A stretch of 64,000 nt of DNA, taken from Schmidtea nova (Eukaryota). The stretch lies in contig CM097883.1 in assembly GCA_044892505.1 (NCBI GenBank), positions 310,868,001 through 310,932,000 of the forward strand, given 5' to 3'. Shown here one piece after another: positions 1,221 through 61,392 of the stretch (positions within the stretch are counted from its first letter, which is position 1; each line of letters opens with the position of its first letter). The position numbers were made by a program, and so were the translations under genes. The notes under the pieces were generated by a model. The model searched no databases. It saw only the letters and a list, made by a program, of their open reading frames with translations, and was not told the origin of the DNA.

Positions 1221-1547
1221 ATGTCAACTATACATTGTAGCATTTGTTTAGAAAATTGTTCGACTTCATTTGCAAAGTTATCTGAATGTCGTCATGAATT
1301 CTGTGAGAGTTGTATCAAAGGCTGGATGAAATATTCTTCTACGTGTCCATTAGATAGATCAGTAACTAAAACGTTAATTATATACAACAATCCTGTAGAA
1401 AGAACTATAAAAGATACTATTACTGTTAAACCTAAATCTTCAAACGACAACGACGACGACGATGACGATAATTATGAGTCACAATTCTTCGAATATGACT
1501 TGGCATATTATTTGACGGCTGATGATCATGAATTGGATGATGAATAA
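1221..1547 (+). CDS. RING-finger (C3HC3D) protein, truncated allele, 108 aa, copy 1
   Basis: Intact RING motif; TAA at codon 109; the frame downstream still encodes the acidic tail. ATG is 12 nt after the GTG used by the ORF track. Confidence 0.62.
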   Translation: MSTIHCSICLENCSTSFAKLSECRHEFCESCIKGWMKYSSTCPLDRSVTKTLIIYNNPVERTIKDTITVKPKSSNDNDDDDDDNYESQFFEYDLAYYLTADDHELDDE

Positions 1548-1817
1548 GGTAGCGATTTTGAGGTTGATTCAGATGAAGAAGAAGAAAGTGACACAGACGC
1601 AAGTTACACTGACGAAAGTGAAACAGACGCAAGTGATACGGACGAAAGTGACTTGGACGAAGTTGACACTGACGAAAGTGACACGGACGAAGAAAGTGAA
1701 AATTAGTATCAAAATGTTATCATCAATATAGAATAGGTTTGATAAATTAGGCTAATTGAAACTTCTTTCATGAAAAGATGATTCTTCCTTGAGTTTACTT
1801 TGCATTTATATTAGAAT

Positions 1818-1823
1818 ATTAAA
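1818..1823 (+). terminator. Candidate poly(A) signal ATTAAA, in every unit
   Basis: 112 bp after the full-length stop position and followed by a GT/T-rich tract. Confidence 0.35.
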
Positions 1824-2478
1824 CGTTTTCTGGGTATTGGTGATATTTGCGCTATTTATATTTGTATTTTGTTTTAATATTACTGCTCTTTATATATGAA
1901 TAATACAAGAACTGCTGATTGTTTTGATATTTTAGACTAAAGGTTTATCAGGATATCGAAAGTGTGTTGGGAATCTATGAAATATCTGTTTTTTAATTAT
2001 ATTATTTTTATTATTATTAATATTATTATTATTGAAATTTTTATTATTTTTGATAATTTTAAACTTTTTTTATCATAAATACTAATACTTTTAAAATCAT
2101 TGAAGTAAAAAACAAAAAATACACTTAACGTCATTAGGATTTGTAATAATTATATATAGATATAACAATTTTCAATTAAATACATGGATGGTCGACTCGA
2201 CTTTTACAATTATTTCAAATATTTTATTTTATGCTTGGCCTCCACAAACCAGTTATCCATTTCGTAAAAGTATTATTAGTTATGAGACTACAGCTGTTAC
2301 CACCTTATAAATGTATTTTATCTGTAACATAAATGTAGTATATATGAAGTGGAATATGAAATCTTTTTTTCTCATGCATCCGTTTCATATGATTAATCGT
2401 ATATCGTTAAAATTTCAAAATCTTTCTTTTCTTTATCTTGCAAAGTACTTACGTAATTGTTTGATCCACGTTTCCGTC

Positions 2479-2509
<31 letters not shown>

Positions 2510-2821
2510 ACGAAATGGAACATGGCTCCGTTTTCAATTCGTAAAATCGAATACAAGTGGAAGTTCTCATGGAATTTTTATCTTTTTGACAACAACACCG
2601 TCGTTTTTCAGTTTTTTCATCTTATACCTTGTAGTTGATAATTGAGTTTCACACTTTCAAAGATAACGTAAATCCATCTGCTTTTATTTAATTTTTAATT
2701 ACTTTTTATTGGTTTAAAGTGTTAAAGTAATCAGAATTCGACACTATTTATGTACGTTATTATATGAATTTTGACTACTATAAAATAACGAGATAAAATT
2801 AAGAGTAAAGTGAAATTTAAA

Positions 2822-3307
2822 ATGTCAACTATACATTGTAGCATTTGTTTAGAAAATTGTTCGACTTCATTTGCAAAGTTATCTGAATGTCGTCATGAAT
2901 TCTGTGAGAGTTGTATCAAAGGCTGGATGAAATATTCTTCTACGTGTCCATTAGATAGATCAGTAACTAAAACGTTAATTATATACAACAATCCTGTAGA
3001 AAGAACTATAAAAGATACTATTACTGTTAAACCTAAATCTTCAAACGACAACGACGACGACGATGACGATAATTATGAGTCACAATTCTTCGAATATGAC
3101 TTGGCATATTATTTGACGGCTGATGATCATGAATTGGATGATGAATCAGGTAGCGATTTTGAGGTTGATTCAGATGAAGAAGAAGAAAGTGACACAGGCG
3201 CAAGTTACACTGACGAAAGTGAAACAGACGCAAGTGATACGGACGAAAGTGACTTGGACGAAGTTGACACTGACGAAAGTGACACGGACGAAGAAAGTGA
3301 AAATTAG
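2822..3307 (+). CDS. RING-finger (C3HC3D) putative E3 ubiquitin ligase with acidic tail, full-length 161 aa, copy 2
   Basis: CSIC-x13-CRHEFCESC-x10-CPLD motif; conserved RING Trp (KGW); D/E/S/T-rich C-terminus; TCA at codon 109. Confidence 0.87.
   Translation: MSTIHCSICLENCSTSFAKLSECRHEFCESCIKGWMKYSSTCPLDRSVTKTLIIYNNPVERTIKDTITVKPKSSNDNDDDDDDNYESQFFEYDLAYYLTADDHELDDESGSDFEVDSDEEEESDTGASYTDESETDASDTDESDLDEVDTDESDTDEESEN
3185..3304 (+). repeat. Coding 15-bp (5-aa) degenerate repeat x8 forming the acidic tail; present in every unit
   Basis: ESDTG ASYTD ESETD ASDTD ESDLD EVDTD ESDTD EESEN. Confidence 0.85.
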
Positions 3308-4077
3308 TATCAAAATGTTATCATCAATATAGAATAGGTTTGATAAATTAGGCTAATTGAAACTTCTTTCATGAAAAGATGATTCTTCCTTGAGTTTACT
3401 TTGCATTTATATTAGAATATTAAACGTTTTCTGGGTATTGGTGATATTTGCGCTATTTATATTTTTATTTTGTTTTAATATTACTGCTCTTTATATATGA
3501 ATAATACAAGAACTGCTGATTGTTTTGATATTTTAGACTAAAGGTTTATCAGGATATCGAAAGTGTGTTGGGAATCTATGAAATATCTGTTTTTTAATTA
3601 TATTATTTTTATTATTATTAATATTATTATTATTGAAATTTTTATTATTTTTGATAATTTTAAACTTTTTTTATCATAAATACTAATACTTTTAAAATCA
3701 TTGAAGTAAAAAACAAAAAATACACTTAACGTCATTAGGATTTGTAATAATTATATATAGATATAACAATTTTCAATTAAATACATGGATGGTCGACTCG
3801 ACTTTTACAATTATTTCAAATATTTTATTTTATGCTTGGCCTCCACAAACCAGTTATCCATTTCGTAAAAGTATTATTAGTTATGAGACTACAGCTGTTA
3901 CCACCTTATAAATGTATTTTATCTGTAACATAAATGTAGTATATATGAAGTGGAATATGAAATCTTTTTTTCTCATGCATCCGTTTCATATGATTAATCG
4001 TATATCGTTAAAATTTCAAAATCTTTCTTTTCTTTATCTTGCAAAGTACTTACGTAATTGTTTGATCCACGTTTCCG

Positions 4078-4128
<51 letters not shown>

Positions 4129-4440: not shown

Positions 4441-4767
4441 ATGTCAACTATACATTGTAGCATTTGTTTAGAAAATTGTTCGACTTCATTTGCAAAGTTA
4501 TCTGAATGTCGTCATGAATTCTGTGAGAGTTGTATCAAAGGCTGGATGAAATATTCTTCTACGTGTCCATTAGATAGATCAGTAACTAAAACGTTAATTA
4601 TATACAACAATCCTGTAGAAAGAACTATAAAAGATACTATTACTGTTAAACCTAAATCTTCAAACGACAACGACGACGACGATGACGATAATTATGAGTC
4701 ACAATTCTTCGAATATGACTTGGCATATTATTTGACGGCTGATGATCATGAATTGGATGATGAATAA
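4441..4767 (+). CDS. RING protein, truncated allele, copy 3
   Basis: Same ORF, TAA at codon 109. Confidence 0.62.
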   Translation: MSTIHCSICLENCSTSFAKLSECRHEFCESCIKGWMKYSSTCPLDRSVTKTLIIYNNPVERTIKDTITVKPKSSNDNDDDDDDNYESQFFEYDLAYYLTADDHELDDE

Positions 4768-5696: not shown

Positions 5697-5755
<59 letters not shown>

Positions 5756-6067: not shown

Positions 6068-6394
6068 ATGTCAACTATACATTGTAGCATTTGTTTAGAA
6101 AATTGTTCGACTTCATTTGCAAAGTTATCTGAATGTCGTCATGAATTCTGTGAGAGTTGTATCAAAGGCTGGATGAAATATTCTTCTACGTGTCCATTAG
6201 ATAGATCAGTAACTAAAACGTTAATTATATACAACAATCCTGTAGAAAGAACTATAAAAGATACTATTACTGTTAAACCTAAATCTTCAAACGACAACGA
6301 CGACGACGATGACGATAATTATGAGTCACAATTCTTCGAATATGACTTGGCATATTATTTGACGGCTGATGATCATGAATTGGATGATGAATAA
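6068..6394 (+). CDS. RING protein, truncated allele, copy 4
   Basis: Same ORF, TAA at codon 109. Confidence 0.62.
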   Translation: MSTIHCSICLENCSTSFAKLSECRHEFCESCIKGWMKYSSTCPLDRSVTKTLIIYNNPVERTIKDTITVKPKSSNDNDDDDDDNYESQFFEYDLAYYLTADDHELDDE

Positions 6395-7325: not shown

Positions 7326-7356
<31 letters not shown>

Positions 7357-7668: not shown

Positions 7669-7995
7669 ATGTCAACTATACATTGTAGCATTTGTTTAGA
7701 AAATTGTTCGACTTCATTTGCAAAGTTATCTGAATGTCGTCATGAATTCTGTGAGAGTTGTATCAAAGGCTGGATGAAATATTCTTCTACGTGTCCATTA
7801 GATAGATCAGTAACTAAAACGTTAATTATATACAACAATCCTGTAGAAAGAACTATAAAAGATACTATTACTGTTAAACCTAAATCTTCAAACGACAACG
7901 ACGACGACGATGACGATAATTATGAGTCACAATTCTTCGAATATGACTTGGCATATTATTTGACGGCTGATGATCATGAATTGGATGATGAATAA
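7669..7995 (+). CDS. RING protein, truncated allele, copy 5
   Basis: Same ORF, TAA at codon 109. Confidence 0.62.
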   Translation: MSTIHCSICLENCSTSFAKLSECRHEFCESCIKGWMKYSSTCPLDRSVTKTLIIYNNPVERTIKDTITVKPKSSNDNDDDDDDNYESQFFEYDLAYYLTADDHELDDE

Positions 7996-9267: not shown

Positions 9268-9753
9268 ATGTCAACTATACATTGTAGCATTTGTTTAGAA
9301 AATTGTTCGACTTCATTTGCAAAGTTATCTGAATGTCGTCATGAATTCTGTGAGAGTTGTATCAAAGGCTGGATGAAATATTCTTCTACGTGTCCATTAG
9401 ATAGATCAGTAACTAAAACGTTAATTATATACAACAATCCTGTAGAAAGAACTATAAAAGATACTATTACTGTTAAACCTAAATCTTCAAACGACAACGA
9501 CGACGACGATGACGATAATTATGAGTCACAATTCTTCGAATATGACTTGGCATATTATTTGACGGCTGATGATCATGAATTGGATGATGAATCAGGTAGC
9601 GATTTTGAGGTTGATTCAGATGAAGAAGAAGAAAGTGACACAGGCGCAAGTTACACTGACGAAAGTGAAACAGACGCAAGTGATACGGACGAAAGTGACT
9701 TGGACGAAGTTGACACTGACGAAAGTGACACGGACGAAGAAAGTGAAAATTAG
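9268..9753 (+). CDS. RING protein, full-length, copy 6
   Basis: Same ORF, TCA at codon 109. Confidence 0.87.
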   Translation: MSTIHCSICLENCSTSFAKLSECRHEFCESCIKGWMKYSSTCPLDRSVTKTLIIYNNPVERTIKDTITVKPKSSNDNDDDDDDNYESQFFEYDLAYYLTADDHELDDESGSDFEVDSDEEEESDTGASYTDESETDASDTDESDLDEVDTDESDTDEESEN

Positions 9754-10523: not shown

Positions 10524-10572
<49 letters not shown>

Positions 10573-10884: not shown

Positions 10885-11211
10885 ATGTCAACTATACATT
10901 GTAGCATTTGTTTAGAAAATTGTTCGACTTCATTTGCAAAGTTATCTGAATGTCGTCATGAATTCTGTGAGAGTTGTATCAAAGGCTGGATGAAATATTC
11001 TTCTACGTGTCCATTAGATAGATCAGTAACTAAAACGTTAATTATATACAACAATCCTGTAGAAAGAACTATAAAAGATACTATTACTGTTAAACCTAAA
11101 TCTTCAAACGACAACGACGACGACGATGACGATAATTATGAGTCACAATTCTTCGAATATGACTTGGCATATTATTTGACGGCTGATGATCATGAATTGG
11201 ATGATGAATAA
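10885..11211 (+). CDS. RING protein, truncated allele, copy 7
   Basis: Same ORF, TAA at codon 109. Confidence 0.62.
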   Translation: MSTIHCSICLENCSTSFAKLSECRHEFCESCIKGWMKYSSTCPLDRSVTKTLIIYNNPVERTIKDTITVKPKSSNDNDDDDDDNYESQFFEYDLAYYLTADDHELDDE

Positions 11212-12140: not shown

Positions 12141-12187
<47 letters not shown>

Positions 12188-12499: not shown

Positions 12500-12826
12500 A
12501 TGTCAACTATACATTGTAGCATTTGTTTAGAAAATTGTTCGACTTCATTTGCAAAGTTATCTGAATGTCGTCATGAATTCTGTGAGAGTTGTATCAAAGG
12601 CTGGATGAAATATTCTTCTACGTGTCCATTAGATAGATCAGTAACTAAAACGTTAATTATATACAACAATCCTGTAGAAAGAACTATAAAAGATACTATT
12701 ACTGTTAAACCTAAATCTTCAAACGACAACGACGACGACGATGACGATAATTATGAGTCACAATTCTTCGAATATGACTTGGCATATTATTTGACGGCTG
12801 ATGATCATGAATTGGATGATGAATAA
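12500..12826 (+). CDS. RING protein, truncated allele, copy 8
   Basis: Same ORF, TAA at codon 109. Confidence 0.62.
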   Translation: MSTIHCSICLENCSTSFAKLSECRHEFCESCIKGWMKYSSTCPLDRSVTKTLIIYNNPVERTIKDTITVKPKSSNDNDDDDDDNYESQFFEYDLAYYLTADDHELDDE

Positions 12827-14098: not shown

Positions 14099-14584
14099 AT
14101 GTCAACTATACATTGTAGCATTTGTTTAGAAAATTGTTCGACTTCATTTGCAAAGTTATCTGAATGTCGTCATGAATTCTGTGAGAGTTGTATCAAAGGC
14201 TGGATGAAATATTCTTCTACGTGTCCATTAGATAGATCAGTAACTAAAACGTTAATTATATACAACAATCCTGTAGAAAGAACTATAAAAGATACTATTA
14301 CTGTTAAACCTAAATCTTCAAACGACAACGACGACGACGATGACGATAATTATGAGTCACAATTCTTCGAATATGACTTGGCATATTATTTGACGGCTGA
14401 TGATCATGAATTGGATGATGAATCAGGTAGCGATTTTGAGGTTGATTCAGATGAAGAAGAAGAAAGTGACACAGACGCAAGTTACACTGACGAAAGTGAA
14501 ACAGACGCAAGTGATACGGACGAAAGTGACTTGGACGAAGTTGACACTGACGAAAGTGACACGGACGAAGAAAGTGAAAATTAG
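14099..14584 (+). CDS. RING protein, full-length, copy 9 (recombinant, D126)
   Basis: TCA at codon 109 but GAC at codon 126. Confidence 0.87.
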   Translation: MSTIHCSICLENCSTSFAKLSECRHEFCESCIKGWMKYSSTCPLDRSVTKTLIIYNNPVERTIKDTITVKPKSSNDNDDDDDDNYESQFFEYDLAYYLTADDHELDDESGSDFEVDSDEEEESDTDASYTDESETDASDTDESDLDEVDTDESDTDEESEN

Positions 14585-15697: not shown

Positions 15698-16024
15698 ATG
15701 TCAACTATACATTGTAGCATTTGTTTAGAAAATTGTTCGACTTCATTTGCAAAGTTATCTGAATGTCGTCATGAATTCTGTGAGAGTTGTATCAAAGGCT
15801 GGATGAAATATTCTTCTACGTGTCCATTAGATAGATCAGTAACTAAAACGTTAATTATATACAACAATCCTGTAGAAAGAACTATAAAAGATACTATTAC
15901 TGTTAAACCTAAATCTTCAAACGACAACGACGACGACGATGACGATAATTATGAGTCACAATTCTTCGAATATGACTTGGCATATTATTTGACGGCTGAT
16001 GATCATGAATTGGATGATGAATAA
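15698..16024 (+). CDS. RING protein, truncated allele, copy 10
   Basis: Same ORF, TAA at codon 109. Confidence 0.62.
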   Translation: MSTIHCSICLENCSTSFAKLSECRHEFCESCIKGWMKYSSTCPLDRSVTKTLIIYNNPVERTIKDTITVKPKSSNDNDDDDDDNYESQFFEYDLAYYLTADDHELDDE

Positions 16025-17294: not shown

Positions 17295-17621
17295 ATGTCA
17301 ACTATACATTGTAGCATTTGTTTAGAAAATTGTTCGACTTCATTTGCAAAGTTATCTGAATGTCGTCATGAATTCTGTGAGAGTTGTATCAAAGGCTGGA
17401 TGAAATATTCTTCTACGTGTCCATTAGATAGATCAGTAACTAAAACGTTAATTATATACAACAATCCTGTAGAAAGAACTATAAAAGATACTATTACTGT
17501 TAAACCTAAATCTTCAAACGACAACGACGACGACGATGACGATAATTATGAGTCACAATTCTTCGAATATGACTTGGCATATTATTTGACGGCTGATGAT
17601 CATGAATTGGATGATGAATAA
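17295..17621 (+). CDS. RING protein, truncated allele, copy 11
   Basis: TAA at codon 109; GAA>AAA downstream of the stop. Confidence 0.62.
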   Translation: MSTIHCSICLENCSTSFAKLSECRHEFCESCIKGWMKYSSTCPLDRSVTKTLIIYNNPVERTIKDTITVKPKSSNDNDDDDDDNYESQFFEYDLAYYLTADDHELDDE

Positions 17622-18893: not shown

Positions 18894-19379
18894 ATGTCAA
18901 CTATACATTGTAGCATTTGTTTAGAAAATTGTTCGACTTCATTTGCAAAGTTATCTGAATGTCGTCATGAATTCTGTGAGAGTTGTATCAAAGGCTGGAT
19001 GAAATATTCTTCTACGTGTCCATTAGATAGATCAGTAACTAAAACGTTAATTATATACAACAATCCTGTAGAAAGAACTATAAAAGATACTATTACTGTT
19101 AAACCTAAATCTTCAAACGACAACGACGACGACGATGACGATAATTATGAGTCACAATTCTTCGAATATGACTTGGCATATTATTTGACGGCTGATGATC
19201 ATGAATTGGATGATGAATCAGGTAGCGATTTTGAGGTTGATTCAGATGAAGAAGAAGAAAGTGACACAGGCGCAAGTTACACTGACGAAAGTGAAACAGA
19301 CGCAAGTGATACGGACGAAAGTGACTTGGACGAAGTTGACACTGACGAAAGTGACACGGACGAAGAAAGTGAAAATTAG
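18894..19379 (+). CDS. RING protein, full-length, copy 12
   Basis: Same ORF, TCA at codon 109. Confidence 0.87.
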   Translation: MSTIHCSICLENCSTSFAKLSECRHEFCESCIKGWMKYSSTCPLDRSVTKTLIIYNNPVERTIKDTITVKPKSSNDNDDDDDDNYESQFFEYDLAYYLTADDHELDDESGSDFEVDSDEEEESDTGASYTDESETDASDTDESDLDEVDTDESDTDEESEN

Positions 19380-20494: not shown

Positions 20495-20980
20495 ATGTCA
20501 ACTATACATTGTAGCATTTGTTTAGAAAATTGTTCGACTTCATTTGCAAAGTTATCTGAATGTCGTCATGAATTCTGTGAGAGTTGTATCAAAGGCTGGA
20601 TGAAATATTCTTCTACGTGTCCATTAGATAGATCAGTAACTAAAACGTTAATTATATACAACAATCCTGTAGAAAGAACTATAAAAGATACTATTACTGT
20701 TAAACCTAAATCTTCAAACGACAACGACGACGACGATGACGATAATTATGAGTCACAATTCTTCGAATATGACTTGGCATATTATTTGACGGCTGATGAT
20801 CATGAATTGGATGATGAATCAGGTAGCGATTTTGAGGTTGATTCAGATGAAGAAGAAGAAAGTGACACAGGCGCAAGTTACACTGACGAAAGTGAAACAG
20901 ACGCAAGTGATACGGACGAAAGTGACTTGGACGAAGTTGACACTGACGAAAGTGACACGGACGAAGAAAGTGAAAATTAG
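20495..20980 (+). CDS. RING protein, full-length, copy 13
   Basis: Same ORF, TCA at codon 109. Confidence 0.87.
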   Translation: MSTIHCSICLENCSTSFAKLSECRHEFCESCIKGWMKYSSTCPLDRSVTKTLIIYNNPVERTIKDTITVKPKSSNDNDDDDDDNYESQFFEYDLAYYLTADDHELDDESGSDFEVDSDEEEESDTGASYTDESETDASDTDESDLDEVDTDESDTDEESEN

Positions 20981-22095: not shown

Positions 22096-22422
22096 ATGTC
22101 AACTATACATTGTAGCATTTGTTTAGAAAATTGTTCGACTTCATTTGCAAAGTTATCTGAATGTCGTCATGAATTCTGTGAGAGTTGTATCAAAGGCTGG
22201 ATGAAATATTCTTCTACGTGTCCATTAGATAGATCAGTAACTAAAACGTTAATTATATACAACAATCCTGTAGAAAGAACTATAAAAGATACTATTACTG
22301 TTAAACCTAAATCTTCAAACGACAACGACGACGACGATGACGATAATTATGAGTCACAATTCTTCGAATATGACTTGGCATATTATTTGACGGCTGATGA
22401 TCATGAATTGGATGATGAATAA
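22096..22422 (+). CDS. RING protein, truncated allele, copy 14
   Basis: TAA at codon 109; GAA>AAA downstream of the stop. Confidence 0.62.
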   Translation: MSTIHCSICLENCSTSFAKLSECRHEFCESCIKGWMKYSSTCPLDRSVTKTLIIYNNPVERTIKDTITVKPKSSNDNDDDDDDNYESQFFEYDLAYYLTADDHELDDE

Positions 22423-23694: not shown

Positions 23695-24021
23695 ATGTCA
23701 ACTATACATTGTAGCATTTGTTTAGAAAATTGTTCGACTTCATTTGCAAAGTTATCTGAATGTCGTCATGAATTCTGTGAGAGTTGTATCAAAGGCTGGA
23801 TGAAATATTCTTCTACGTGTCCATTAGATAGATCAGTAACTAAAACGTTAATTATATACAACAATCCTGTAGAAAGAACTATAAAAGATACTATTACTGT
23901 TAAACCTAAATCTTCAAACGACAACGACGACGACGATGACGATAATTATGAGTCACAATTCTTCGAATATGACTTGGCATATTATTTGACGGCTGATGAT
24001 CATGAATTGGATGATGAATAA
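23695..24021 (+). CDS. RING protein, truncated allele, copy 15
   Basis: Same ORF, TAA at codon 109. Confidence 0.62.
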   Translation: MSTIHCSICLENCSTSFAKLSECRHEFCESCIKGWMKYSSTCPLDRSVTKTLIIYNNPVERTIKDTITVKPKSSNDNDDDDDDNYESQFFEYDLAYYLTADDHELDDE

Positions 24022-25291: not shown

Positions 25292-25618
25292 ATGTCAACT
25301 ATACATTGTAGCATTTGTTTAGAAAATTGTTCGACTTCATTTGCAAAGTTATCTGAATGTCGTCATGAATTCTGTGAGAGTTGTATCAAAGGCTGGATGA
25401 AATATTCTTCTACGTGTCCATTAGATAGATCAGTAACTAAAACGTTAATTATATACAACAATCCTGTAGAAAGAACTATAAAAGATACTATTACTGTTAA
25501 ACCTAAATCTTCAAACGACAACGACGACGACGATGACGATAATTATGAGTCACAATTCTTCGAATATGACTTGGCATATTATTTGACGGCTGATGATCAT
25601 GAATTGGATGATGAATAA
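25292..25618 (+). CDS. RING protein, truncated allele, copy 16
   Basis: Same ORF, TAA at codon 109. Confidence 0.62.
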   Translation: MSTIHCSICLENCSTSFAKLSECRHEFCESCIKGWMKYSSTCPLDRSVTKTLIIYNNPVERTIKDTITVKPKSSNDNDDDDDDNYESQFFEYDLAYYLTADDHELDDE

Positions 25619-26898: not shown

Positions 26899-27384
26899 AT
26901 GTCAACTATACATTGTAGCATTTGTTTAGAAAATTGTTCGACTTCATTTGCAAAGTTATCTGAATGTCGTCATGAATTCTGTGAGAGTTGTATCAAAGGC
27001 TGGATGAAATATTCTTCTACGTGTCCATTAGATAGATCAGTAACTAAAACGTTAATTATATACAACAATCCTGTAGAAAGAACTATAAAAGATACTATTA
27101 CTGTTAAACCTAAATCTTCAAACGACAACGACGACGACGATGACGATAATTATGAGTCACAATTCTTCGAATATGACTTGGCATATTATTTGACGGCTGA
27201 TGATCATGAATTGGATGATGAATCAGGTAGCGATTTTGAGGTTGATTCAGATGAAGAAGAAGAAAGTGACACAGGCGCAAGTTACACTGACGAAAGTGAA
27301 ACAGACGCAAGTGATACGGACGAAAGTGACTTGGACGAAGTTGACACTGACGAAAGTGACACGGACGAAGAAAGTGAAAATTAG
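26899..27384 (+). CDS. RING protein, full-length, copy 17
   Basis: Same ORF, TCA at codon 109. Confidence 0.87.
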   Translation: MSTIHCSICLENCSTSFAKLSECRHEFCESCIKGWMKYSSTCPLDRSVTKTLIIYNNPVERTIKDTITVKPKSSNDNDDDDDDNYESQFFEYDLAYYLTADDHELDDESGSDFEVDSDEEEESDTGASYTDESETDASDTDESDLDEVDTDESDTDEESEN

Positions 27385-28505: not shown

Positions 28506-28832
28506 ATGTCAACTATACATTGTAGCATTTGTTTAGAAAATTGTTCGACTTCATTTGCAAAGTTATCTGAATGTCGTCATGAATTCTGTGAGAGTTGTAT
28601 CAAAGGCTGGATGAAATATTCTTCTACGTGTCCATTAGATAGATCAGTAACTAAAACGTTAATTATATACAACAATCCTGTAGAAAGAACTATAAAAGAT
28701 ACTATTACTGTTAAACCTAAATCTTCAAACGACAACGACGACGACGATGACGATAATTATGAGTCACAATTCTTCGAATATGACTTGGCATATTATTTGA
28801 CGGCTGATGATCATGAATTGGATGATGAATAA
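28506..28832 (+). CDS. RING protein, truncated allele, copy 18
   Basis: Same ORF, TAA at codon 109. Confidence 0.62.
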   Translation: MSTIHCSICLENCSTSFAKLSECRHEFCESCIKGWMKYSSTCPLDRSVTKTLIIYNNPVERTIKDTITVKPKSSNDNDDDDDDNYESQFFEYDLAYYLTADDHELDDE

Positions 28833-34917: not shown

Positions 34918-35403
34918 ATGTCAACTATACATTGTAGCATTTGTTTAGAAAATTGTTCGACTTCATTTGCAAAGTTATCTGAATGTCGTCATGAATTCTG
35001 TGAGAGTTGTATCAAAGGCTGGATGAAATATTCTTCTACGTGTCCATTAGATAGATCAGTAACTAAAACGTTAATTATATACAACAATCCTGTAGAAAGA
35101 ACTATAAAAGATACTATTACTGTTAAACCTAAATCTTCAAACGACAACGACGACGACGATGACGATAATTATGAGTCACAATTCTTCGAATATGACTTGG
35201 CATATTATTTGACGGCTGATGATCATGAATTGGATGATGAATCAGGTAGCGATTTTGAGGTTGATTCAGATGAAGAAGAAGAAAGTGACACAGGCGCAAG
35301 TTACACTGACGAAAGTGAAACAGACGCAAGTGATACGGACGAAAGTGACTTGGACGAAGTTGACACTGACGAAAGTGACACGGACGAAGAAAGTGAAAAT
35401 TAG
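34918..35403 (+). CDS. RING protein, full-length, copy 22
   Basis: Same ORF, TCA at codon 109. Confidence 0.87.
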   Translation: MSTIHCSICLENCSTSFAKLSECRHEFCESCIKGWMKYSSTCPLDRSVTKTLIIYNNPVERTIKDTITVKPKSSNDNDDDDDDNYESQFFEYDLAYYLTADDHELDDESGSDFEVDSDEEEESDTGASYTDESETDASDTDESDLDEVDTDESDTDEESEN

Positions 35404-36536: not shown

Positions 36537-37022
36537 ATGTCAACTATACATTGTAGCATTTGTTTAGAAAATTGTTCGACTTCATTTGCAAAGTTATCTG
36601 AATGTCGTCATGAATTCTGTGAGAGTTGTATCAAAGGCTGGATGAAATATTCTTCTACGTGTCCATTAGATAGATCAGTAACTAAAACGTTAATTATATA
36701 CAACAATCCTGTAGAAAGAACTATAAAAGATACTATTACTGTTAAACCTAAATCTTCAAACGACAACGACGACGACGATGACGATAATTATGAGTCACAA
36801 TTCTTCGAATATGACTTGGCATATTATTTGACGGCTGATGATCATGAATTGGATGATGAATCAGGTAGCGATTTTGAGGTTGATTCAGATGAAGAAGAAG
36901 AAAGTGACACAGGCGCAAGTTACACTGACGAAAGTGAAACAGACGCAAGTGATACGGACGAAAGTGACTTGGACGAAGTTGACACTGACGAAAGTGACAC
37001 GGACGAAGAAAGTGAAAATTAG
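36537..37022 (+). CDS. RING protein, full-length, copy 23
   Basis: Same ORF, TCA at codon 109. Confidence 0.87.
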   Translation: MSTIHCSICLENCSTSFAKLSECRHEFCESCIKGWMKYSSTCPLDRSVTKTLIIYNNPVERTIKDTITVKPKSSNDNDDDDDDNYESQFFEYDLAYYLTADDHELDDESGSDFEVDSDEEEESDTGASYTDESETDASDTDESDLDEVDTDESDTDEESEN

Positions 37023-38163: not shown

Positions 38164-38490
38164 ATGTCAACTATACATTGTAGCATTTGTTTAGAAAATT
38201 GTTCGACTTCATTTGCAAAGTTATCTGAATGTCGTCATGAATTCTGTGAGAGTTGTATCAAAGGCTGGATGAAATATTCTTCTACGTGTCCATTAGATAG
38301 ATCAGTAACTAAAACGTTAATTATATACAACAATCCTGTAGAAAGAACTATAAAAGATACTATTACTGTTAAACCTAAATCTTCAAACGACAACGACGAC
38401 GACGATGACGATAATTATGAGTCACAATTCTTCGAATATGACTTGGCATATTATTTGACGGCTGATGATCATGAATTGGATGATGAATAA
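38164..38490 (+). CDS. RING protein, truncated allele, copy 24
   Basis: Same ORF, TAA at codon 109. Confidence 0.62.
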   Translation: MSTIHCSICLENCSTSFAKLSECRHEFCESCIKGWMKYSSTCPLDRSVTKTLIIYNNPVERTIKDTITVKPKSSNDNDDDDDDNYESQFFEYDLAYYLTADDHELDDE

Positions 38491-39786: not shown

Positions 39787-40113
39787 ATGTCAACTATACA
39801 TTGTAGCATTTGTTTAGAAAATTGTTCGACTTCATTTGCAAAGTTATCTGAATGTCGTCATGAATTCTGTGAGAGTTGTATCAAAGGCTGGATGAAATAT
39901 TCTTCTACGTGTCCATTAGATAGATCAGTAACTAAAACGTTAATTATATACAACAATCCTGTAGAAAGAACTATAAAAGATACTATTACTGTTAAACCTA
40001 AATCTTCAAACGACAACGACGACGACGATGACGATAATTATGAGTCACAATTCTTCGAATATGACTTGGCATATTATTTGACGGCTGATGATCATGAATT
40101 GGATGATGAATAA
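39787..40113 (+). CDS. RING protein, truncated allele, copy 25
   Basis: Same ORF, TAA at codon 109. Confidence 0.62.
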   Translation: MSTIHCSICLENCSTSFAKLSECRHEFCESCIKGWMKYSSTCPLDRSVTKTLIIYNNPVERTIKDTITVKPKSSNDNDDDDDDNYESQFFEYDLAYYLTADDHELDDE

Positions 40114-41385: not shown

Positions 41386-41712
41386 ATGTCAACTATACAT
41401 TGTAGCATTTGTTTAGAAAATTGTTCGACTTCATTTGCAAAGTTATCTGAATGTCGTCATGAATTCTGTGAGAGTTGTATCAAAGGCTGGATGAAATATT
41501 CTTCTACGTGTCCATTAGATAGATCAGTAACTAAAACGTTAATTATATACAACAATCCTGTAGAAAGAACTATAAAAGATACTATTACTGTTAAACCTAA
41601 ATCTTCAAACGACAACGACGACGACGATGACGATAATTATGAGTCACAATTCTTCGAATATGACTTGGCATATTATTTGACGGCTGATGATCATGAATTG
41701 GATGATGAATAA
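41386..41712 (+). CDS. RING protein, truncated allele, copy 26 (recombinant)
   Basis: TAA at codon 109 but GGC at codon 126. Confidence 0.62.
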   Translation: MSTIHCSICLENCSTSFAKLSECRHEFCESCIKGWMKYSSTCPLDRSVTKTLIIYNNPVERTIKDTITVKPKSSNDNDDDDDDNYESQFFEYDLAYYLTADDHELDDE

Positions 41713-43020: not shown

Positions 43021-43347
43021 ATGTCAACTATACATTGTAGCATTTGTTTAGAAAATTGTTCGACTTCATTTGCAAAGTTATCTGAATGTCGTCATGAATT
43101 CTGTGAGAGTTGTATCAAAGGCTGGATGAAATATTCTTCTACGTGTCCATTAGATAGATCAGTAACTAAAACGTTAATTATATACAACAATCCTGTAGAA
43201 AGAACTATAAAAGATACTATTACTGTTAAACCTAAATCTTCAAACGACAACGACGACGACGATGACGATAATTATGAGTCACAATTCTTCGAATATGACT
43301 TGGCATATTATTTGACGGCTGATGATCATGAATTGGATGATGAATAA
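43021..43347 (+). CDS. RING protein, truncated allele, copy 27
   Basis: Same ORF, TAA at codon 109. Confidence 0.62.
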   Translation: MSTIHCSICLENCSTSFAKLSECRHEFCESCIKGWMKYSSTCPLDRSVTKTLIIYNNPVERTIKDTITVKPKSSNDNDDDDDDNYESQFFEYDLAYYLTADDHELDDE

Positions 43348-44310: not shown

Positions 44311-44313
<3 letters not shown>

Positions 44314-44645
44314 CATAATTATCTTTTTTCACCTTTGATCTTTTTTTATTATTATTATCAATAATTCTCATAATGACTATAGATCAAAATTTTTTTTTAT
44401 AAACAATAACACAATATTTCGGCACAGCCTTTATCAAGTGTGTATTTATTATTATCAATAATTCTCATAATGACTATAGATCAAAATTTTTTTTTATAAA
44501 CAATAACACAATATTTCGGCACAGCCTTTATCAAGTGTGTATTTCTCAAATACACACTTGATAAAGGCTGTGCCGAAATATTGTGTTATTGTTTATAAAA
44601 AAAAATTTTGATCTATAGTCATTATGAGAATTATTGATAATAATA
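44311..44645. other. 335-bp foreign insertion within the (AT)n tract: unique 37 bp + A (100 bp) + A' (97 bp) + CTC + reverse complement of A
   Basis: Unit length 1962 = 1573 + (AT)16 + (AT)11 + 335. 44348-44447 is repeated at 44448-44544 and inverted at 44548-44647. Confidence 0.95.
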
Positions 44646-44982
44646 ATATATATATATATATATATATTTAACGAAATGGAACATGGCTCCGTTTTCAATT
44701 CGTAAAATCGAATACAAGTGGAAGTTCTCATGGAATTTTTATCTTTTTGACAACAACACCGTCGTTTTTCAGTTTTTTCATCTTATACCTTGTAGTTGAT
44801 AATTGAGTTTCACACTTTCAAAGATAACGTAAATCCATCTGCTTTTATTTAATTTTTAATTACTTTTTATTGGTTTAAAGTGTTAAAGTAATCAGAATTC
44901 GACACTATTTATGTACGTTATTATATGAATTTTGACTACTATAAAATAACGAGATAAAATTAAGAGTAAAGTGAAATTTAAA

Positions 44983-45309
44983 ATGTCAACTATACATTGT
45001 AGCATTTGTTTAGAAAATTGTTCGACTTCATTTGCAAAGTTATCTGAATGTCGTCATGAATTCTGTGAGAGTTGTATCAAAGGCTGGATGAAATATTCTT
45101 CTACGTGTCCATTAGATAGATCAGTAACTAAAACGTTAATTATATACAACAATCCTGTAGAAAGAACTATAAAAGATACTATTACTGTTAAACCTAAATC
45201 TTCAAACGACAACGACGACGACGATGACGATAATTATGAGTCACAATTCTTCGAATATGACTTGGCATATTATTTGACGGCTGATGATCATGAATTGGAT
45301 GATGAATAA
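44983..45309 (+). CDS. RING protein, truncated allele, copy 28
   Basis: Same ORF, TAA at codon 109. Confidence 0.6.
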   Translation: MSTIHCSICLENCSTSFAKLSECRHEFCESCIKGWMKYSSTCPLDRSVTKTLIIYNNPVERTIKDTITVKPKSSNDNDDDDDDNYESQFFEYDLAYYLTADDHELDDE

Positions 45310-46583: not shown

Positions 46584-47069
46584 ATGTCAACTATACATTG
46601 TAGCATTTGTTTAGAAAATTGTTCGACTTCATTTGCAAAGTTATCTGAATGTCGTCATGAATTCTGTGAGAGTTGTATCAAAGGCTGGATGAAATATTCT
46701 TCTACGTGTCCATTAGATAGATCAGTAACTAAAACGTTAATTATATACAACAATCCTGTAGAAAGAACTATAAAAGATACTATTACTGTTAAACCTAAAT
46801 CTTCAAACGACAACGACGACGACGATGACGATAATTATGAGTCACAATTCTTCGAATATGACTTGGCATATTATTTGACGGCTGATGATCATGAATTGGA
46901 TGATGAATCAGGTAGCGATTTTGAGGTTGATTCAGATGAAGAAGAAGAAAGTGACACAGGCGCAAGTTACACTGACGAAAGTGAAACAGACGCAAGTGAT
47001 ACGGACGAAAGTGACTTGGACGAAGTTGACACTGACGAAAGTGACACGGACGAAGAAAGTGAAAATTAG
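46584..47069 (+). CDS. RING protein, full-length, copy 29
   Basis: Same ORF, TCA at codon 109. Confidence 0.87.
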   Translation: MSTIHCSICLENCSTSFAKLSECRHEFCESCIKGWMKYSSTCPLDRSVTKTLIIYNNPVERTIKDTITVKPKSSNDNDDDDDDNYESQFFEYDLAYYLTADDHELDDESGSDFEVDSDEEEESDTGASYTDESETDASDTDESDLDEVDTDESDTDEESEN

Positions 47070-48204: not shown

Positions 48205-48531
48205 ATGTCAACTATACATTGTAGCATTTGTTTAGAAAATTGTTCGACTTCATTTGCAAAGTTATCTGAATGTCGTCATGAATTCTGTGAGAGTTGTATC
48301 AAAGGCTGGATGAAATATTCTTCTACGTGTCCATTAGATAGATCAGTAACTAAAACGTTAATTATATACAACAATCCTGTAGAAAGAACTATAAAAGATA
48401 CTATTACTGTTAAACCTAAATCTTCAAACGACAACGACGACGACGATGACGATAATTATGAGTCACAATTCTTCGAATATGACTTGGCATATTATTTGAC
48501 GGCTGATGATCATGAATTGGATGATGAATAA
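48205..48531 (+). CDS. RING protein, truncated allele, copy 30
   Basis: Same ORF, TAA at codon 109. Confidence 0.62.
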   Translation: MSTIHCSICLENCSTSFAKLSECRHEFCESCIKGWMKYSSTCPLDRSVTKTLIIYNNPVERTIKDTITVKPKSSNDNDDDDDDNYESQFFEYDLAYYLTADDHELDDE

Positions 48532-49804: not shown

Positions 49805-50290
49805 ATGTCAACTATACATTGTAGCATTTGTTTAGAAAATTGTTCGACTTCATTTGCAAAGTTATCTGAATGTCGTCATGAATTCTGTGAGAGTTGTATC
49901 AAAGGCTGGATGAAATATTCTTCTACGTGTCCATTAGATAGATCAGTAACTAAAACGTTAATTATATACAACAATCCTGTAGAAAGAACTATAAAAGATA
50001 CTATTACTGTTAAACCTAAATCTTCAAACGACAACGACGACGACGATGACGATAATTATGAGTCACAATTCTTCGAATATGACTTGGCATATTATTTGAC
50101 GGCTGATGATCATGAATTGGATGATGAATCAGGTAGCGATTTTGAGGTTGATTCAGATGAAGAAGAAGAAAGTGACACAGGCGCAAGTTACACTGACGAA
50201 AGTGAAACAGACGCAAGTGATACGGACGAAAGTGACTTGGACGAAGTTGACACTGACGAAAGTGACACGGACGAAGAAAGTGAAAATTAG
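49805..50290 (+). CDS. RING protein, full-length, copy 31
   Basis: Same ORF, TCA at codon 109. Confidence 0.87.
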   Translation: MSTIHCSICLENCSTSFAKLSECRHEFCESCIKGWMKYSSTCPLDRSVTKTLIIYNNPVERTIKDTITVKPKSSNDNDDDDDDNYESQFFEYDLAYYLTADDHELDDESGSDFEVDSDEEEESDTGASYTDESETDASDTDESDLDEVDTDESDTDEESEN

Positions 50291-51060: not shown

Positions 51061-51115
<55 letters not shown>

Positions 51116-51427: not shown

Positions 51428-51754
51428 ATGTCAACTATACATTGTAGCATTTGTTTAGAAAATTGTTCGACTTCATTTGCAAAGTTATCTGAATGTCGTC
51501 ATGAATTCTGTGAGAGTTGTATCAAAGGCTGGATGAAATATTCTTCTACGTGTCCATTAGATAGATCAGTAACTAAAACGTTAATTATATACAACAATCC
51601 TGTAGAAAGAACTATAAAAGATACTATTACTGTTAAACCTAAATCTTCAAACGACAACGACGACGACGATGACGATAATTATGAGTCACAATTCTTCGAA
51701 TATGACTTGGCATATTATTTGACGGCTGATGATCATGAATTGGATGATGAATAA
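51428..51754 (+). CDS. RING protein, truncated allele, copy 32
   Basis: Same ORF, TAA at codon 109. Confidence 0.62.
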   Translation: MSTIHCSICLENCSTSFAKLSECRHEFCESCIKGWMKYSSTCPLDRSVTKTLIIYNNPVERTIKDTITVKPKSSNDNDDDDDDNYESQFFEYDLAYYLTADDHELDDE

Positions 51755-52683: not shown

Positions 52684-52726
<43 letters not shown>

Positions 52727-53038: not shown

Positions 53039-53365
53039 ATGTCAACTATACATTGTAGCATTTGTTTAGAAAATTGTTCGACTTCATTTGCAAAGTTATC
53101 TGAATGTCGTCATGAATTCTGTGAGAGTTGTATCAAAGGCTGGATGAAATATTCTTCTACGTGTCCATTAGATAGATCAGTAACTAAAACGTTAATTATA
53201 TACAACAATCCTGTAGAAAGAACTATAAAAGATACTATTACTGTTAAACCTAAATCTTCAAACGACAACGACGACGACGATGACGATAATTATGAGTCAC
53301 AATTCTTCGAATATGACTTGGCATATTATTTGACGGCTGATGATCATGAATTGGATGATGAATAA
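53039..53365 (+). CDS. RING protein, truncated allele, copy 33
   Basis: Same ORF, TAA at codon 109. Confidence 0.62.
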   Translation: MSTIHCSICLENCSTSFAKLSECRHEFCESCIKGWMKYSSTCPLDRSVTKTLIIYNNPVERTIKDTITVKPKSSNDNDDDDDDNYESQFFEYDLAYYLTADDHELDDE

Positions 53366-54635: not shown

Positions 54636-55121
54636 ATGTCAACTATACATTGTAGCATTTGTTTAGAAAATTGTTCGACTTCATTTGCAAAGTTATCTGA
54701 ATGTCGTCATGAATTCTGTGAGAGTTGTATCAAAGGCTGGATGAAATATTCTTCTACGTGTCCATTAGATAGATCAGTAACTAAAACGTTAATTATATAC
54801 AACAATCCTGTAGAAAGAACTATAAAAGATACTATTACTGTTAAACCTAAATCTTCAAACGACAACGACGACGACGATGACGATAATTATGAGTCACAAT
54901 TCTTCGAATATGACTTGGCATATTATTTGACGGCTGATGATCATGAATTGGATGATGAATCAGGTAGCGATTTTGAGGTTGATTCAGATGAAGAAGAAGA
55001 AAGTGACACAGGCGCAAGTTACACTGACGAAAGTGAAACAGACGCAAGTGATACGGACGAAAGTGACTTGGACGAAGTTGACACTGACGAAAGTGACACG
55101 GACGAAGAAAGTGAAAATTAG
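54636..55121 (+). CDS. RING protein, full-length, copy 34
   Basis: Same ORF, TCA at codon 109. Confidence 0.87.
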   Translation: MSTIHCSICLENCSTSFAKLSECRHEFCESCIKGWMKYSSTCPLDRSVTKTLIIYNNPVERTIKDTITVKPKSSNDNDDDDDDNYESQFFEYDLAYYLTADDHELDDESGSDFEVDSDEEEESDTGASYTDESETDASDTDESDLDEVDTDESDTDEESEN

Positions 55122-56234: not shown

Positions 56235-56720
56235 ATGTCAACTATACATTGTAGCATTTGTTTAGAAAATTGTTCGACTTCATTTGCAAAGTTATCTGAA
56301 TGTCGTCATGAATTCTGTGAGAGTTGTATCAAAGGCTGGATGAAATATTCTTCTACGTGTCCATTAGATAGATCAGTAACTAAAACGTTAATTATATACA
56401 ACAATCCTGTAGAAAGAACTATAAAAGATACTATTACTGTTAAACCTAAATCTTCAAACGACAACGACGACGACGATGACGATAATTATGAGTCACAATT
56501 CTTCGAATATGACTTGGCATATTATTTGACGGCTGATGATCATGAATTGGATGATGAATCAGGTAGCGATTTTGAGGTTGATTCAGATGAAGAAGAAGAA
56601 AGTGACACAGGCGCAAGTTACACTGACGAAAGTGAAACAGACGCAAGTGATACGGACGAAAGTGACTTGGACGAAGTTGACACTGACGAAAGTGACACGG
56701 ACGAAGAAAGTGAAAATTAG
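56235..56720 (+). CDS. RING protein, full-length, copy 35
   Basis: Same ORF, TCA at codon 109. Confidence 0.87.
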   Translation: MSTIHCSICLENCSTSFAKLSECRHEFCESCIKGWMKYSSTCPLDRSVTKTLIIYNNPVERTIKDTITVKPKSSNDNDDDDDDNYESQFFEYDLAYYLTADDHELDDESGSDFEVDSDEEEESDTGASYTDESETDASDTDESDLDEVDTDESDTDEESEN

Positions 56721-57490: not shown

Positions 57491-57531
<41 letters not shown>

Positions 57532-57843: not shown

Positions 57844-58170
57844 ATGTCAACTATACATTGTAGCATTTGTTTAGAAAATTGTTCGACTTCATTTGCAAAG
57901 TTATCTGAATGTCGTCATGAATTCTGTGAGAGTTGTATCAAAGGCTGGATGAAATATTCTTCTACGTGTCCATTAGATAGATCAGTAACTAAAACGTTAA
58001 TTATATACAACAATCCTGTAGAAAGAACTATAAAAGATACTATTACTGTTAAACCTAAATCTTCAAACGACAACGACGACGACGATGACGATAATTATGA
58101 GTCACAATTCTTCGAATATGACTTGGCATATTATTTGACGGCTGATGATCATGAATTGGATGATGAATAA
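57844..58170 (+). CDS. RING protein, truncated allele, copy 36
   Basis: Same ORF, TAA at codon 109. Confidence 0.62.
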   Translation: MSTIHCSICLENCSTSFAKLSECRHEFCESCIKGWMKYSSTCPLDRSVTKTLIIYNNPVERTIKDTITVKPKSSNDNDDDDDDNYESQFFEYDLAYYLTADDHELDDE

Positions 58171-59099: not shown

Positions 59100-59134
<35 letters not shown>

Positions 59135-59446
59135 ATGAAATGGAACATGGCTCCGTTTTCAATTCGTAAAATCGAATACAAGTGGAAGTTCTCATGGAAT
59201 TTTTATCTTTTTGACAACAACACCGTCGTTTTTCAGTTTTTTCATCTTATACCTTGTAGTTGATAATTGAGTTTCACACTTTCAAAGATAACGTAAATCC
59301 ATCTGCTTTTATTTAATTTTTAATTACTTTTTATTGGTTTAAAGTGTTAAAGTAATCAGAATTCGACACTATTTATGTACGTTATTATATGAATTTTGAC
59401 TACTATAAAATAACGAGATAAAATTAAGAGTAAAGTGAAATTTAAA

Positions 59447-59932
59447 ATGTCAACTATACATTGTAGCATTTGTTTAGAAAATTGTTCGACTTCATTTGCA
59501 AAGTTATCTGAATGTCGTCATGAATTCTGTGAGAGTTGTATCAAAGGCTGGATGAAATATTCTTCTACGTGTCCATTAGATAGATCAGTAACTAAAACGT
59601 TAATTATATACAACAATCCTGTAGAAAGAACTATAAAAGATACTATTACTGTTAAACCTAAATCTTCAAACGACAACGACGATGACGATGACGATAATTA
59701 TGAGTCACAATTCTTCGAATATGACTTGGCATATTATTTGACGGCTGATGATCATGAATTGGATGATGAATCAGGTAGCGATTTTGAGGTTGATTCAGAT
59801 GAAGAAGAAGAAAGTGACACAGGCGCAAGTTACACTGACGAAAGTGAAACAGACGCAAGTGATACGGACGAAAGTGACTTGGACGAAGTTGACACTGACG
59901 AAAGTGACACGGACGAAGAAAGTGAAAATTAG
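59447..59932 (+). CDS. RING protein, full-length, copy 37
   Basis: TCA at codon 109; one synonymous GAC>GAT at 59683. Confidence 0.87.
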   Translation: MSTIHCSICLENCSTSFAKLSECRHEFCESCIKGWMKYSSTCPLDRSVTKTLIIYNNPVERTIKDTITVKPKSSNDNDDDDDDNYESQFFEYDLAYYLTADDHELDDESGSDFEVDSDEEEESDTGASYTDESETDASDTDESDLDEVDTDESDTDEESEN

Positions 59933-60702
59933 TATCAAAATGTTATCATCAATATAGAATAGGTTTGATAAATTAGGCTAATTGAAACTTCTTTCATGAA
60001 AAGATGATTCTTCCTTGAGTTTACTTTGCATTTATATTAGAATATTAAACGTTTTCTGGGTATTGGTGATATTTGCGCTATTTATATTTTTATTTTGTTT
60101 TAATATTACTGCTCTTTATATATGAATAATACAAGAACTGCTGATTGTTTTGATATTATAGACTAAAGGTTTATCAGGATATCGAAAGTGTGTTGGGAAT
60201 CTATGAAATATCTGTTTTTTAATTATATTATTTTTATTATTATTAATATTATTATTATTGAAATTTTTATTATTTTTGATAATTTTAAACTTTTTTTATC
60301 ATAAATACTAATACTTTTAAAATCATTGAAGTAAAAAACAAAAAATACACTTAACGTCATTAGGATTTGTAATAATTATATATAGATATAACAATTTTCA
60401 ATTAAATACATGGATGGTCGACTCGACTTTTACAATTATTTCAAATATTTTATTTTATGCTTGGCCTCCACAAACCAGTTATCCATTTCGTAAAAGTATT
60501 ATTAGTTATGAGACTACAGCTGTTACCACCTTATAAATGTATTTTATCTGTAACATAAATGTAGTATATATGAAGTGGAATATGAAATCTTTTTTTCTCA
60601 TGCATCCGTTTCATATGATTAATCGTATATCGTTAAAATTTCAAAATCTTTCTTTTCTTTATCTTGCAAAGTACTTACGTAATTGTTTGATCCACGTTTC
60701 CG

Positions 60703-60753
<51 letters not shown>

Positions 60754-61065
60754 ACGAAATGGAACATGGCTCCGTTTTCAATTCGTAAAATCGAATACAA
60801 GTGGAAGTTCTCATGGAATTTTTATCTTTTTGACAACAACACCGTCGTTTTTCAGTTTTTTCATCTTATACCTTGTAGTTGATAATTGAGTTTCACACTT
60901 TCAAAGATAACGTAAATCCATCTGCTTTTATTTAATTTTTAATTACTTTTTATTGGTTTAAAGTGTTAAAGTAATCAGAATTCGACACTATTTATGTACG
61001 TTATTATATGAATTTTGACTACTATAAAATAACGAGATAAAATTAAGAGTAAAGTGAAATTTAAA

Positions 61066-61392
61066 ATGTCAACTATACATTGTAGCATTTGTTTAGAAAA
61101 TTGTTCGACTTCATTTGCAAAGTTATCTGAATGTCGTCATGAATTCTGTGAGAGTTGTATCAAAGGCTGGATGAAATATTCTTCTACGTGTCCATTAGAT
61201 AGATCAGTAACTAAAACGTTAATTATATACAACAATCCTGTAGAAAGAACTATAAAAGATACTATTACTGTTAAACCTAAATCTTCAAACGACAACGACG
61301 ACGACGATGACGATAATTATGAGTCACAATTCTTCGAATATGACTTGGCATATTATTTGACGGCTGATGATCATGAATTGGATGATGAATAA
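61066..61392 (+). CDS. RING protein, truncated allele, copy 38 (unit interrupted at 61708)
   Basis: TAA at codon 109; GAA>AAA downstream of the stop. Confidence 0.62.
   Translation: MSTIHCSICLENCSTSFAKLSECRHEFCESCIKGWMKYSSTCPLDRSVTKTLIIYNNPVERTIKDTITVKPKSSNDNDDDDDDNYESQFFEYDLAYYLTADDHELDDE

Follow-up and report, generated by a model that had tools for sequence, protein, structure and literature searches.

The array and its two unit types

The window analysed here is a stretch of 64,000 nucleotides from the planarian Schmidtea nova (GenBank assembly GCA_044892505.1, contig CM097883.1, positions 310,868,001 to 310,932,000). Positions 1 to 61710 of its forward strand are the right-hand 61.7 kb of a head-to-tail array with a unit of about 1.6 kb, and each unit carries an open reading frame (ORF) for a small protein with a RING domain at its N-terminus. 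Scanning the window with a motif of the ORF start gave 38 starts, from 1221 to 61066; the 38 ORFs are complete, and the tail of one more lies at the window start. The spacing between ORFs is 1597-1635 bp, with a 1962-bp unit as the single exception, and the array ends on the right at window position 61710, inside a unit, at about unit position 645. All 38 units in the window thus have what defines a macrosatellite or tandem array, namely kilobase units placed head to tail, nearly identical and with a complete ORF in each. The units are more than 99.5% identical, and a whole-unit alignment contains just nine informative substitutions across the 1.6 kb.

To the left this array, which we call array A, reaches beyond the window to about C2:310844683 (C2 is chromosome scaffold 2), so that its total length is about 85 kb. 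The left extension holds 11 extra copies: eight with a short ORF (S, see below), one with a long ORF (L), one intact edge copy and one broken copy. Of the eight S copies, four lie side by side and have a 30-bp tail deletion in common; downstream of the stop, S copies at the left end also differ by E>K, D>N and S>I. To the right there is an extra intact copy 8 kb from the array, beyond a gap of 500 N; the edge copies are found at C2:310844683 and C2:310937512. A pattern search of the whole genome gave 380 ORF starts, i.e. about 380 copies or about 0.6 Mb.

An alternative version of the right flank is present on the unplaced contig C92 (1-61093, 61 kb). It has six L copies, one S copy and partial units, with a small array (five L, one S and partial units) where the chromosome holds a single L copy, and about 8.8 kb in place of the 500-N gap, and some of its copies have one additional Asp codon in the first acidic patch. 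The contig may be the second haplotype, or else a piece of this locus that the assembly did not resolve.

The first-pass annotation had claimed that a single nonsense change divides the copies into two protein forms, and translation of the 38 copies agrees with it throughout. Fifteen ORFs encode 161 amino acids (L) and 23 encode 108 (S), the division is made by TCA>TAA at codon 109, and the order along the window is the one that had been given, SLSSSLSSLSSLLSSSLSLLSLLSSSSSLSLSSLLSLS. The frame beyond the TAA is open to the normal TAG in 23 of 23 S copies, none of the 38 ORFs has any other stop or frameshift, and the ends of the ORFs match those in the program-made ORF list. The stop is placed in the disordered tail, between the first acidic patch that follows the RING and the 15-bp repeats. 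The S form retains the entire folded domain and lacks 53 acidic, Ser/Thr-rich residues, the repeat block among them. The only remaining coding differences among the 38 copies are E119K (four S copies) and D126G (14 L copies and one S copy), and codons 1-108 show no variation at all. The TAA is not a sequencing slip, because the single-nucleotide polymorphism (SNP) at codon 109 lies outside homopolymers, is linked to other SNPs and recurs on contig C92.

Two ways in which the stop could be overcome were considered and rejected. TAA could be read as Tyr under the alternative flatworm mitochondrial code, but the locus is on a nuclear scaffold of 455.7 Mb and the ORFs of a sister array (array B, below) terminate normally with TAA. 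Readthrough or reinitiation is opposed by the strong terminator context, TAA followed by G, and by the lack of an in-frame ATG in the tail.

The encoded RING protein, its relatives and the constraint on the unit

The RING is of the C3HC3D type. All of 12 family members have its ligands C6, C9, C23, H25, C28, C31, C42 and D45, which follow the spacing C-x2-C-x(9-39)-C-x(1-3)-H-x(2-3)-C-x2-C-x(4-48)-C-x2-C/D that characterises RING domains. Both Pfam families scored above their cut-offs, zf-RING_2 (PF13639) with 35.2 bits against 27.3 and PF00097 with 32.4 bits against 21, and no second Pfam domain was found beyond the RING, only a disordered acidic tail. In an AlphaFold2 model built from the alignment of the 12 family sequences, residues 1-72, with the RING and a beta hairpin at 51-69, have a predicted local distance difference test (pLDDT) above 90, with values of 90-94 over residues 1-70; it falls below 50 for residues 75-118, and residues 75-161 are predicted to be disordered. 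Foldseek overlays the model on RING1B/BMI1, RAD18, RNF12 and RNF8 across 43-51 residues at 1.0-1.5 A, with E-values of about 0.01 that are weak owing to the short domain. The best sequence matches with a solved structure include RNF4, RNF8, BMI1 and TRAF6, and since identity to solved RINGs reaches at best about 30-38% across some 50 residues, we propose no orthology to any of these proteins.

The residues by which RING domains bind the ubiquitin-conjugating enzyme (E2), and the linchpin residue, are known from established RING-E2 structures. Their predicted counterparts, Ile8 behind the initial Cys pair, Trp35 in the helix and Pro43 following ligand seven for the E2 contact, and Arg46 behind the final ligand as linchpin, are present in 38 of 38 copies, and W35 and P43 are invariant or nearly so across the family. 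The array protein is, to judge from these residues, probably a ubiquitin ligase (E3). A homodimer prediction for RING residues 1-76 gave a score of 0.00, which counts neither for nor against self-association.

For comparison we also considered the N-terminal RINGs of PHRF1 and SCAF11, which we take to be of the same C3HC3D kind. Membership in either family was rejected, as the N-terminal RING of the array protein is followed neither by the PHD finger of PHRF1 nor by the arginine/serine-rich (RS/SR-rich) domain of SCAF11. The RING of TRAF6 (PDB 3HCT class, PMC3166285) is similar in that an Asp is the eighth zinc ligand, within a CP-x-D-R/N motif, and in that the RING opens the protein, with a beta strand or hairpin coming next. 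Unlike the proteins of these three types, the array protein lacks a PHD finger, an RS domain, a TRAF domain and zinc-finger repeats behind its RING.

An exhaustive HMMER search revealed a small family of the same architecture, P0001, P0003, P0009, P0011 and P0032, with lengths of 149-254 amino acids and full-length identities of 21-50% to the array protein; for P0001 the identity is 65% across residues 1-78. They have the same invariant ligands, the hairpin after the RING, and an N-terminal RING with an acidic tail, and none has a described function. They differ from the array in being located on short single AT-rich contigs of 0.8-1.8 kb that show no sign of tandem arrangement, and the flanks of these contigs do not align with the S. 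nova unit; in one such homolog the RING region is conserved next to the non-aligning flanks. Distant named relatives occur in Hymenolepis and Seison. A protein-atlas search brought up small RING proteins of giant viruses with scores of only 0.85-0.88, and a viral origin is a lead only.

A paralogous array, array B, is situated 46 Mb from array A on the same strand (C2:264649774-265137247, about 0.5 Mb) and has roughly 320 units of 1.36-1.41 kb each. Its ORF has 129 amino acids and its protein is 72% identical to the A type. We sampled 110 kb and two 10-kb pieces, which together gave 84 usable copies. The final 110 kb hold 71 copies, 67 of them intact, and several missense subtypes are found in local blocks, for example N90S in 33 of the 84 copies and F27L+I32T in 7. 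That the shorter ORF is itself an earlier, fixed nonsense truncation was rejected, as on alignment the difference comes down to a lower number of 15-bp repeats and a small indel at the natural end.

The comparison of A with B separates the parts of the unit. The ratio of non-synonymous to synonymous substitution rates (dN/dS) is 0.17 in codons 1-76 (12 non-synonymous and 14 synonymous differences; Fisher p=3.7e-5) and 0.92 in the tail, and by this measure the RING part is under purifying selection and the tail is nearly neutral, drifting in sequence and in length. The identity is highest from -200 to +250 of the ATG (82-94%) and only about 50% in the spacer. The conserved block consists of a promoter-like stretch of about 200 bp and the RING ORF, and the unit as a whole looks like a compact intronless gene, presumably transcribed, in which a TATA promoter of about 200 bp precedes the RING ORF. 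The low dN/dS of the RING, the peak of conservation over promoter and RING, and the homologs of the same architecture together indicate a protein-coding family under long-term constraint. Within array B the picture is another one: in codons 1-76 of the 84 copies 18 sites vary by missense and 2 by nonsense changes, compared with 7 synonymous sites, a ratio of non-synonymous to synonymous polymorphism (pN/pS) of about 0.7, and replacements of zinc ligands are among the variants. Single-copy variation in array B is thus near neutral. A McDonald-Kreitman-type test of B polymorphism against fixed differences between A and B was borderline (p=0.051).

Other products of the unit found less favour. 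Rfam gave only sub-threshold, microRNA-like matches on an (AT)n hairpin, and a non-coding RNA identity of the unit was rejected for that reason. The plus-strand ORFs of 107-117 amino acids in the spacer (e.g. 684-1037) are considered spurious, since they cross (AT)n, vary in length with that tract, have no Pfam match and lie in a spacer that is not conserved relative to array B. The (AT)n tracts themselves are found about 320 bp upstream of each ATG and are 24 to 62 bp long. They tend to be longer ahead of S ORFs than ahead of L ORFs (median 40 bp vs 28 bp; Mann-Whitney p=0.02), and the lengths in adjacent units tend to match (p=0.07).

Origin and spread of the stop codon

The first-pass annotation had thought the TAA probably derived, and the wider comparison confirms this. 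Because the stop is absent, and Ser is found instead, in array B, in P0001, which has a full-length ORF, and in both diverged edge copies of array A, TAA is by this comparison the derived state. Three linked sites in the unit tell more about its history. The L units have the haplotype C326-G377-T644 and the S units A326-A377-G644, and since both edge copies and unit u09 carry C-A-G, and the L copies on C92 an intermediate C-G-G, the haplotypes indicate that L and S are two lineages derived separately from an ancestral intact unit, C326-A377-G644. Two units, u09 (C-A) and u26 (A-G), are recombinant, so that all four gametes are present at sites 326 and 377, which are 51 bp apart, and this shows exchange between units. 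The order of L and S cannot be distinguished from a random one (23 runs against 19.2 +/- 2.9 expected; runs test p=0.13), and no alternation or higher-order periodicity was found along the 38 window units. The L:S ratio varies from block to block: the nine units that adjoin the window on the left give 1:8, the window itself 15:23 and C92 6:1, and the S share is about 57-60% of the copies.

We think it reasonably probable that the nonsense allele of the S units is a passenger which unequal exchange or gene conversion has spread, and that these units are not a needed second component. Selection would hold the RING family through the consensus of the array, with redundancy shielding the single copies. 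A single C>A substitution, turning codon 109 into TAA, would have arisen on the ancestral unit type, and unequal crossing-over together with short-tract gene conversion would have carried it to about 60% of the units of array A, where the S units would have become mixed at random with a second derived, intact unit type. The S units would then be passengers, neutral or mildly hypomorphic, that would encode a RING without its tail. Where variation in the copies is near neutral and the consensus is constrained, a nonsense allele can drift to a high frequency in a small array by unequal exchange, and the S form would be more or less harmless.

Some observations do not sit easily with a passenger. 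Nearly all null alleles of array B (four of the five stop-bearing copies) are restricted to one or two of the 84 copies, yet S makes up about 57% of array A; it could be that S is no simple null passenger, or that the small array drifts faster. The 18 residues just past the stop (SGSDFEVDSDEEEESD) are conserved between A and B at 13 of 18 positions, better than the 32 residues before it, and the loss of this segment may cost something, which is a poor fit to a purely neutral rise. Transcription of the units is, for L and S alike, presumed from their sequence. Finally, it is odd that the contigs of four public sequencing runs retain the TCA path alone, given that most units of the primary assembly have TAA. 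In all four runs the main contig has C3147-A3198-G3465, the ancestral combination, which occurs rarely in the assembly, namely in u09 and both edge copies, and over window positions 2507-3591 there is no TAA contig at 5% of depth or more, nor one of the G3198/T3465 type. Run contigs discard minor paths and are evidence only for the presence of intact units, not for the share of TAA, and the four runs, none of them recorded as RNA, come from one 2024 study and are probably the chromatin-type libraries of the genome paper, not independent animals; that paper describes an assay for transposase-accessible chromatin with sequencing (ATAC-seq) on S. nova (PMC11410931, Ivankovic et al. 2024). The TCA-only contigs could reflect the path choice of the assembler or an unassembled haplotype rich in intact units.

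A different view of the same data takes array A for an offshoot that is decaying or silent, in effect a satellite with a young dead gene, and holds that the function resides in array B or the edge copies, and that the difference between L and S is irrelevant. With codons 1-108 invariant in the 38 copies, constraint inside array A cannot be demonstrated and the dN/dS signal could stem from the B lineage alone; 57% of the copies are truncated, the left-end S copies have gone further, with their 30-bp tail deletion and amino acid changes past the stop, and no RNA run was among those listed. We nevertheless regard a silent array as unlikely, since between A and B no part of the unit is conserved better than promoter block and RING ORF. 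That the 38 ORFs, TAA aside, have no frameshift or stop, and that 15 are fully intact, points the same way weakly, as homogenisation alone could explain it.

The first-pass annotation had left two alternatives, a nonsense allele that hitchhiked through concerted evolution and a two-component system. The former fits all tests: the derived TAA, the two haplotype classes, the recombinants, the random order, the ratio that varies by block and the near-neutral copies of array B. The latter, for which we found no positive support, holds that both forms are made, that the tail-less RING is a partner, decoy or dominant-negative modulator of the full-length protein, and that the L:S copy ratio sets the dose. 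The S form does keep the whole folded domain, including the predicted Ile8, Trp35, Pro43 and Arg46, and S units are frequent (23 of 38) and have diversified into subtypes. Exon-junction-dependent decay of messenger RNA needs introns, and TAA transcripts of an intronless gene should escape it; with TAA-G as an efficient terminator a discrete product of 108 amino acids would be expected. A tuned system is nevertheless hard to reconcile with an irregular L/S pattern without periodicity, with a ratio that swings from 1:8 to 6:1 between blocks where a constant one would be looked for, and with a stop that is a single recent derived change; nor was any counterpart of the short form found among the 84 array B copies or the foreign homologs. 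We consider a two-component system quite improbable, and the same holds for a copy-ratio rheostat within a macrosatellite, in which the short form, if transcribed, could compete for E2 or partners while unequal crossing-over shifts the dose.

It is scarcely credible that the C/A difference is an artefact of collapsed or mis-polished repeats, even with only C in the contigs of the four short-read runs and a 500-N gap directly to the right of the array, as the site is strongly linked to two other SNPs up to 318 bp away, recurs on the independent contig C92, lies outside any homopolymer and is found in S subtypes that bear further variants of their own.

The reading of the S units as passengers makes the L/S polymorphism look like a textbook by-product of concerted evolution. 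It would be a clean natural example, with two derived unit types, the ancestral type at the edges of the array, recombinants between the types, and a near-neutral sister array together with a constrained consensus.

Comparable arrays, the units in the window and their surroundings

Histone, 5S and ribosomal DNA arrays and ampliconic germline genes such as Stellate/Su(Ste) of Drosophila are classical multicopy arrays under concerted evolution. Array A resembles them in that selection would act on the array, variant or pseudogene units are spread or lost by unequal exchange or gene conversion, and the edge copies are the most diverged. Arrays A and B, in contrast, are plain paralogs that share a chromosome and a strand, with no evidence of germline-restricted expression, sex linkage or an antagonist array. 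Closer in form are two human macrosatellites, RS447, which has the deubiquitinase USP17/DUB-3 in every 4.7-kb unit (PMC2874809), and D4Z4 with DUX4 (PMC5687341). They share with the S. nova array the kilobase head-to-tail units, each with one complete intronless ORF and a promoter of its own, and the tens to hundreds of copies kept nearly identical by concerted evolution, with intact units beside defective ones; the product of RS447 also belongs to the ubiquitin system. The differences are the planarian host, the shorter and very AT-rich unit of 1.4-1.6 kb and the RING product. Copy-number polymorphism and expression are documented for the human arrays.

The S. nova array is an ORF-bearing macrosatellite or multicopy gene array, and what is new is the small RING family, previously undescribed, and its occurrence in a planarian; we found no mention of a RING array in the S. 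nova genome paper (PMC11410931). With about 380 copies in the genome, this intronless and apparently functional RING gene, if expressed, would be among the largest tandem arrays of the ubiquitin system. One may then ask why such a dose is kept, and burst expression, conflict with the many mobile elements that carry RING and inhibitor-of-apoptosis (IAP) domains, or a satellite-like amplification could each be the reason.

Table 1. Units of array A in the window, and features of the representative unit u02 (window positions).
Feature	Position	Strand	Basis or remark
Representative proximal promoter/leader, u02 (putative)	2622-2821	+	82-88% identity to array B vs ~50% in spacer
TATAAAA, u02	2779-2785	+	37-43 nt before ATG
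u02 L, 161 aa	2822-3307	+	RING, beta hairpin 51-69, disordered acidic tail 75-161
Codon 109, u02 (TCA)	3146-3148	+	C at 3147 is A in S units, giving TAA, next base G
15-bp repeat block, u02	3185-3292	+	encodes TDESD-like pentapeptide tail; beyond stop in S units
AATAAT, putative polyadenylation signal variant	3500-3505	+	AATAAA at homologous place in array B
u01 S, 108 aa	1221-1547	+	ORF translation
u03 S	4441-4767	+	ORF translation
u04 S	6068-6394	+	ORF translation
u05 S	7669-7995	+	ORF translation
u06 L	9268-9753	+	ORF translation
u07 S	10885-11211	+	ORF translation
u08 S	12500-12826	+	ORF translation
u09 L, ancestral haplotype C326-A377-G644 (Asp126)	14099-14584	+	ORF translation, unit alignment
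u10 S	15698-16024	+	ORF translation
u11 S, E119K past stop	17295-17621	+	ORF translation
u12 L	18894-19379	+	ORF translation
u13 L	20495-20980	+	ORF translation
u14 S, E119K	22096-22422	+	ORF translation
u15 S	23695-24021	+	ORF translation
u16 S	25292-25618	+	ORF translation
u17 L	26899-27384	+	ORF translation
u18 S	28506-28832	+	ORF translation
u19 L	30109-30594	+	ORF translation
u20 L	31712-32197	+	ORF translation
u21 S, E119K	33315-33641	+	ORF translation
u22 L	34918-35403	+	ORF translation
u23 L	36537-37022	+	ORF translation
u24 S	38164-38490	+	ORF translation
u25 S	39787-40113	+	ORF translation
u26 S, recombinant haplotype A326-G377-G644	41386-41712	+	ORF translation, unit alignment
u27 S, holds 337-bp insertion 44311-44647	43021-43347	+	ORF translation
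u28 S	44983-45309	+	ORF translation
u29 L	46584-47069	+	ORF translation
u30 S	48205-48531	+	ORF translation
u31 L	49805-50290	+	ORF translation
u32 S	51428-51754	+	ORF translation
u33 S	53039-53365	+	ORF translation
u34 L	54636-55121	+	ORF translation
u35 L	56235-56720	+	ORF translation
u36 S	57844-58170	+	ORF translation
u37 L	59447-59932	+	ORF translation
u38 S, E119K, last unit, cut at 61710	61066-61392	+	ORF translation

The insertion in unit u27 lies in its (AT)n tract and resembles a miniature inverted-repeat transposable element, with terminal inverted repeats of about 100 nt that form a hairpin, an internal direct duplication, and a TA as the site of insertion. Past the end of the array, at 61711-62810, there is a C-rich/T-rich stretch, next to it three direct repeats of about 120 bp, and finally about 550 bp of satellite with a 13-bp, ATGACTCATCAGT-like unit. 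On contig C92 the same flank recurs in inverted orientation ahead of the small array, with 93% identity. Further right, an ORF of 147 amino acids on the minus strand (63053-63496) is possibly a real neighbouring gene or exon; it matched no Pfam family above threshold, and its best hits, ICAT (0.012) and FGF (0.021), were both below the cut-off. At a distance of 11 Mb from the array, at C2:322057663-322058034 on the minus strand, there is an isolated and degenerate copy of the RING ORF, which has several stops and in which the 15-bp tail repeat has grown to at least 12 copies.

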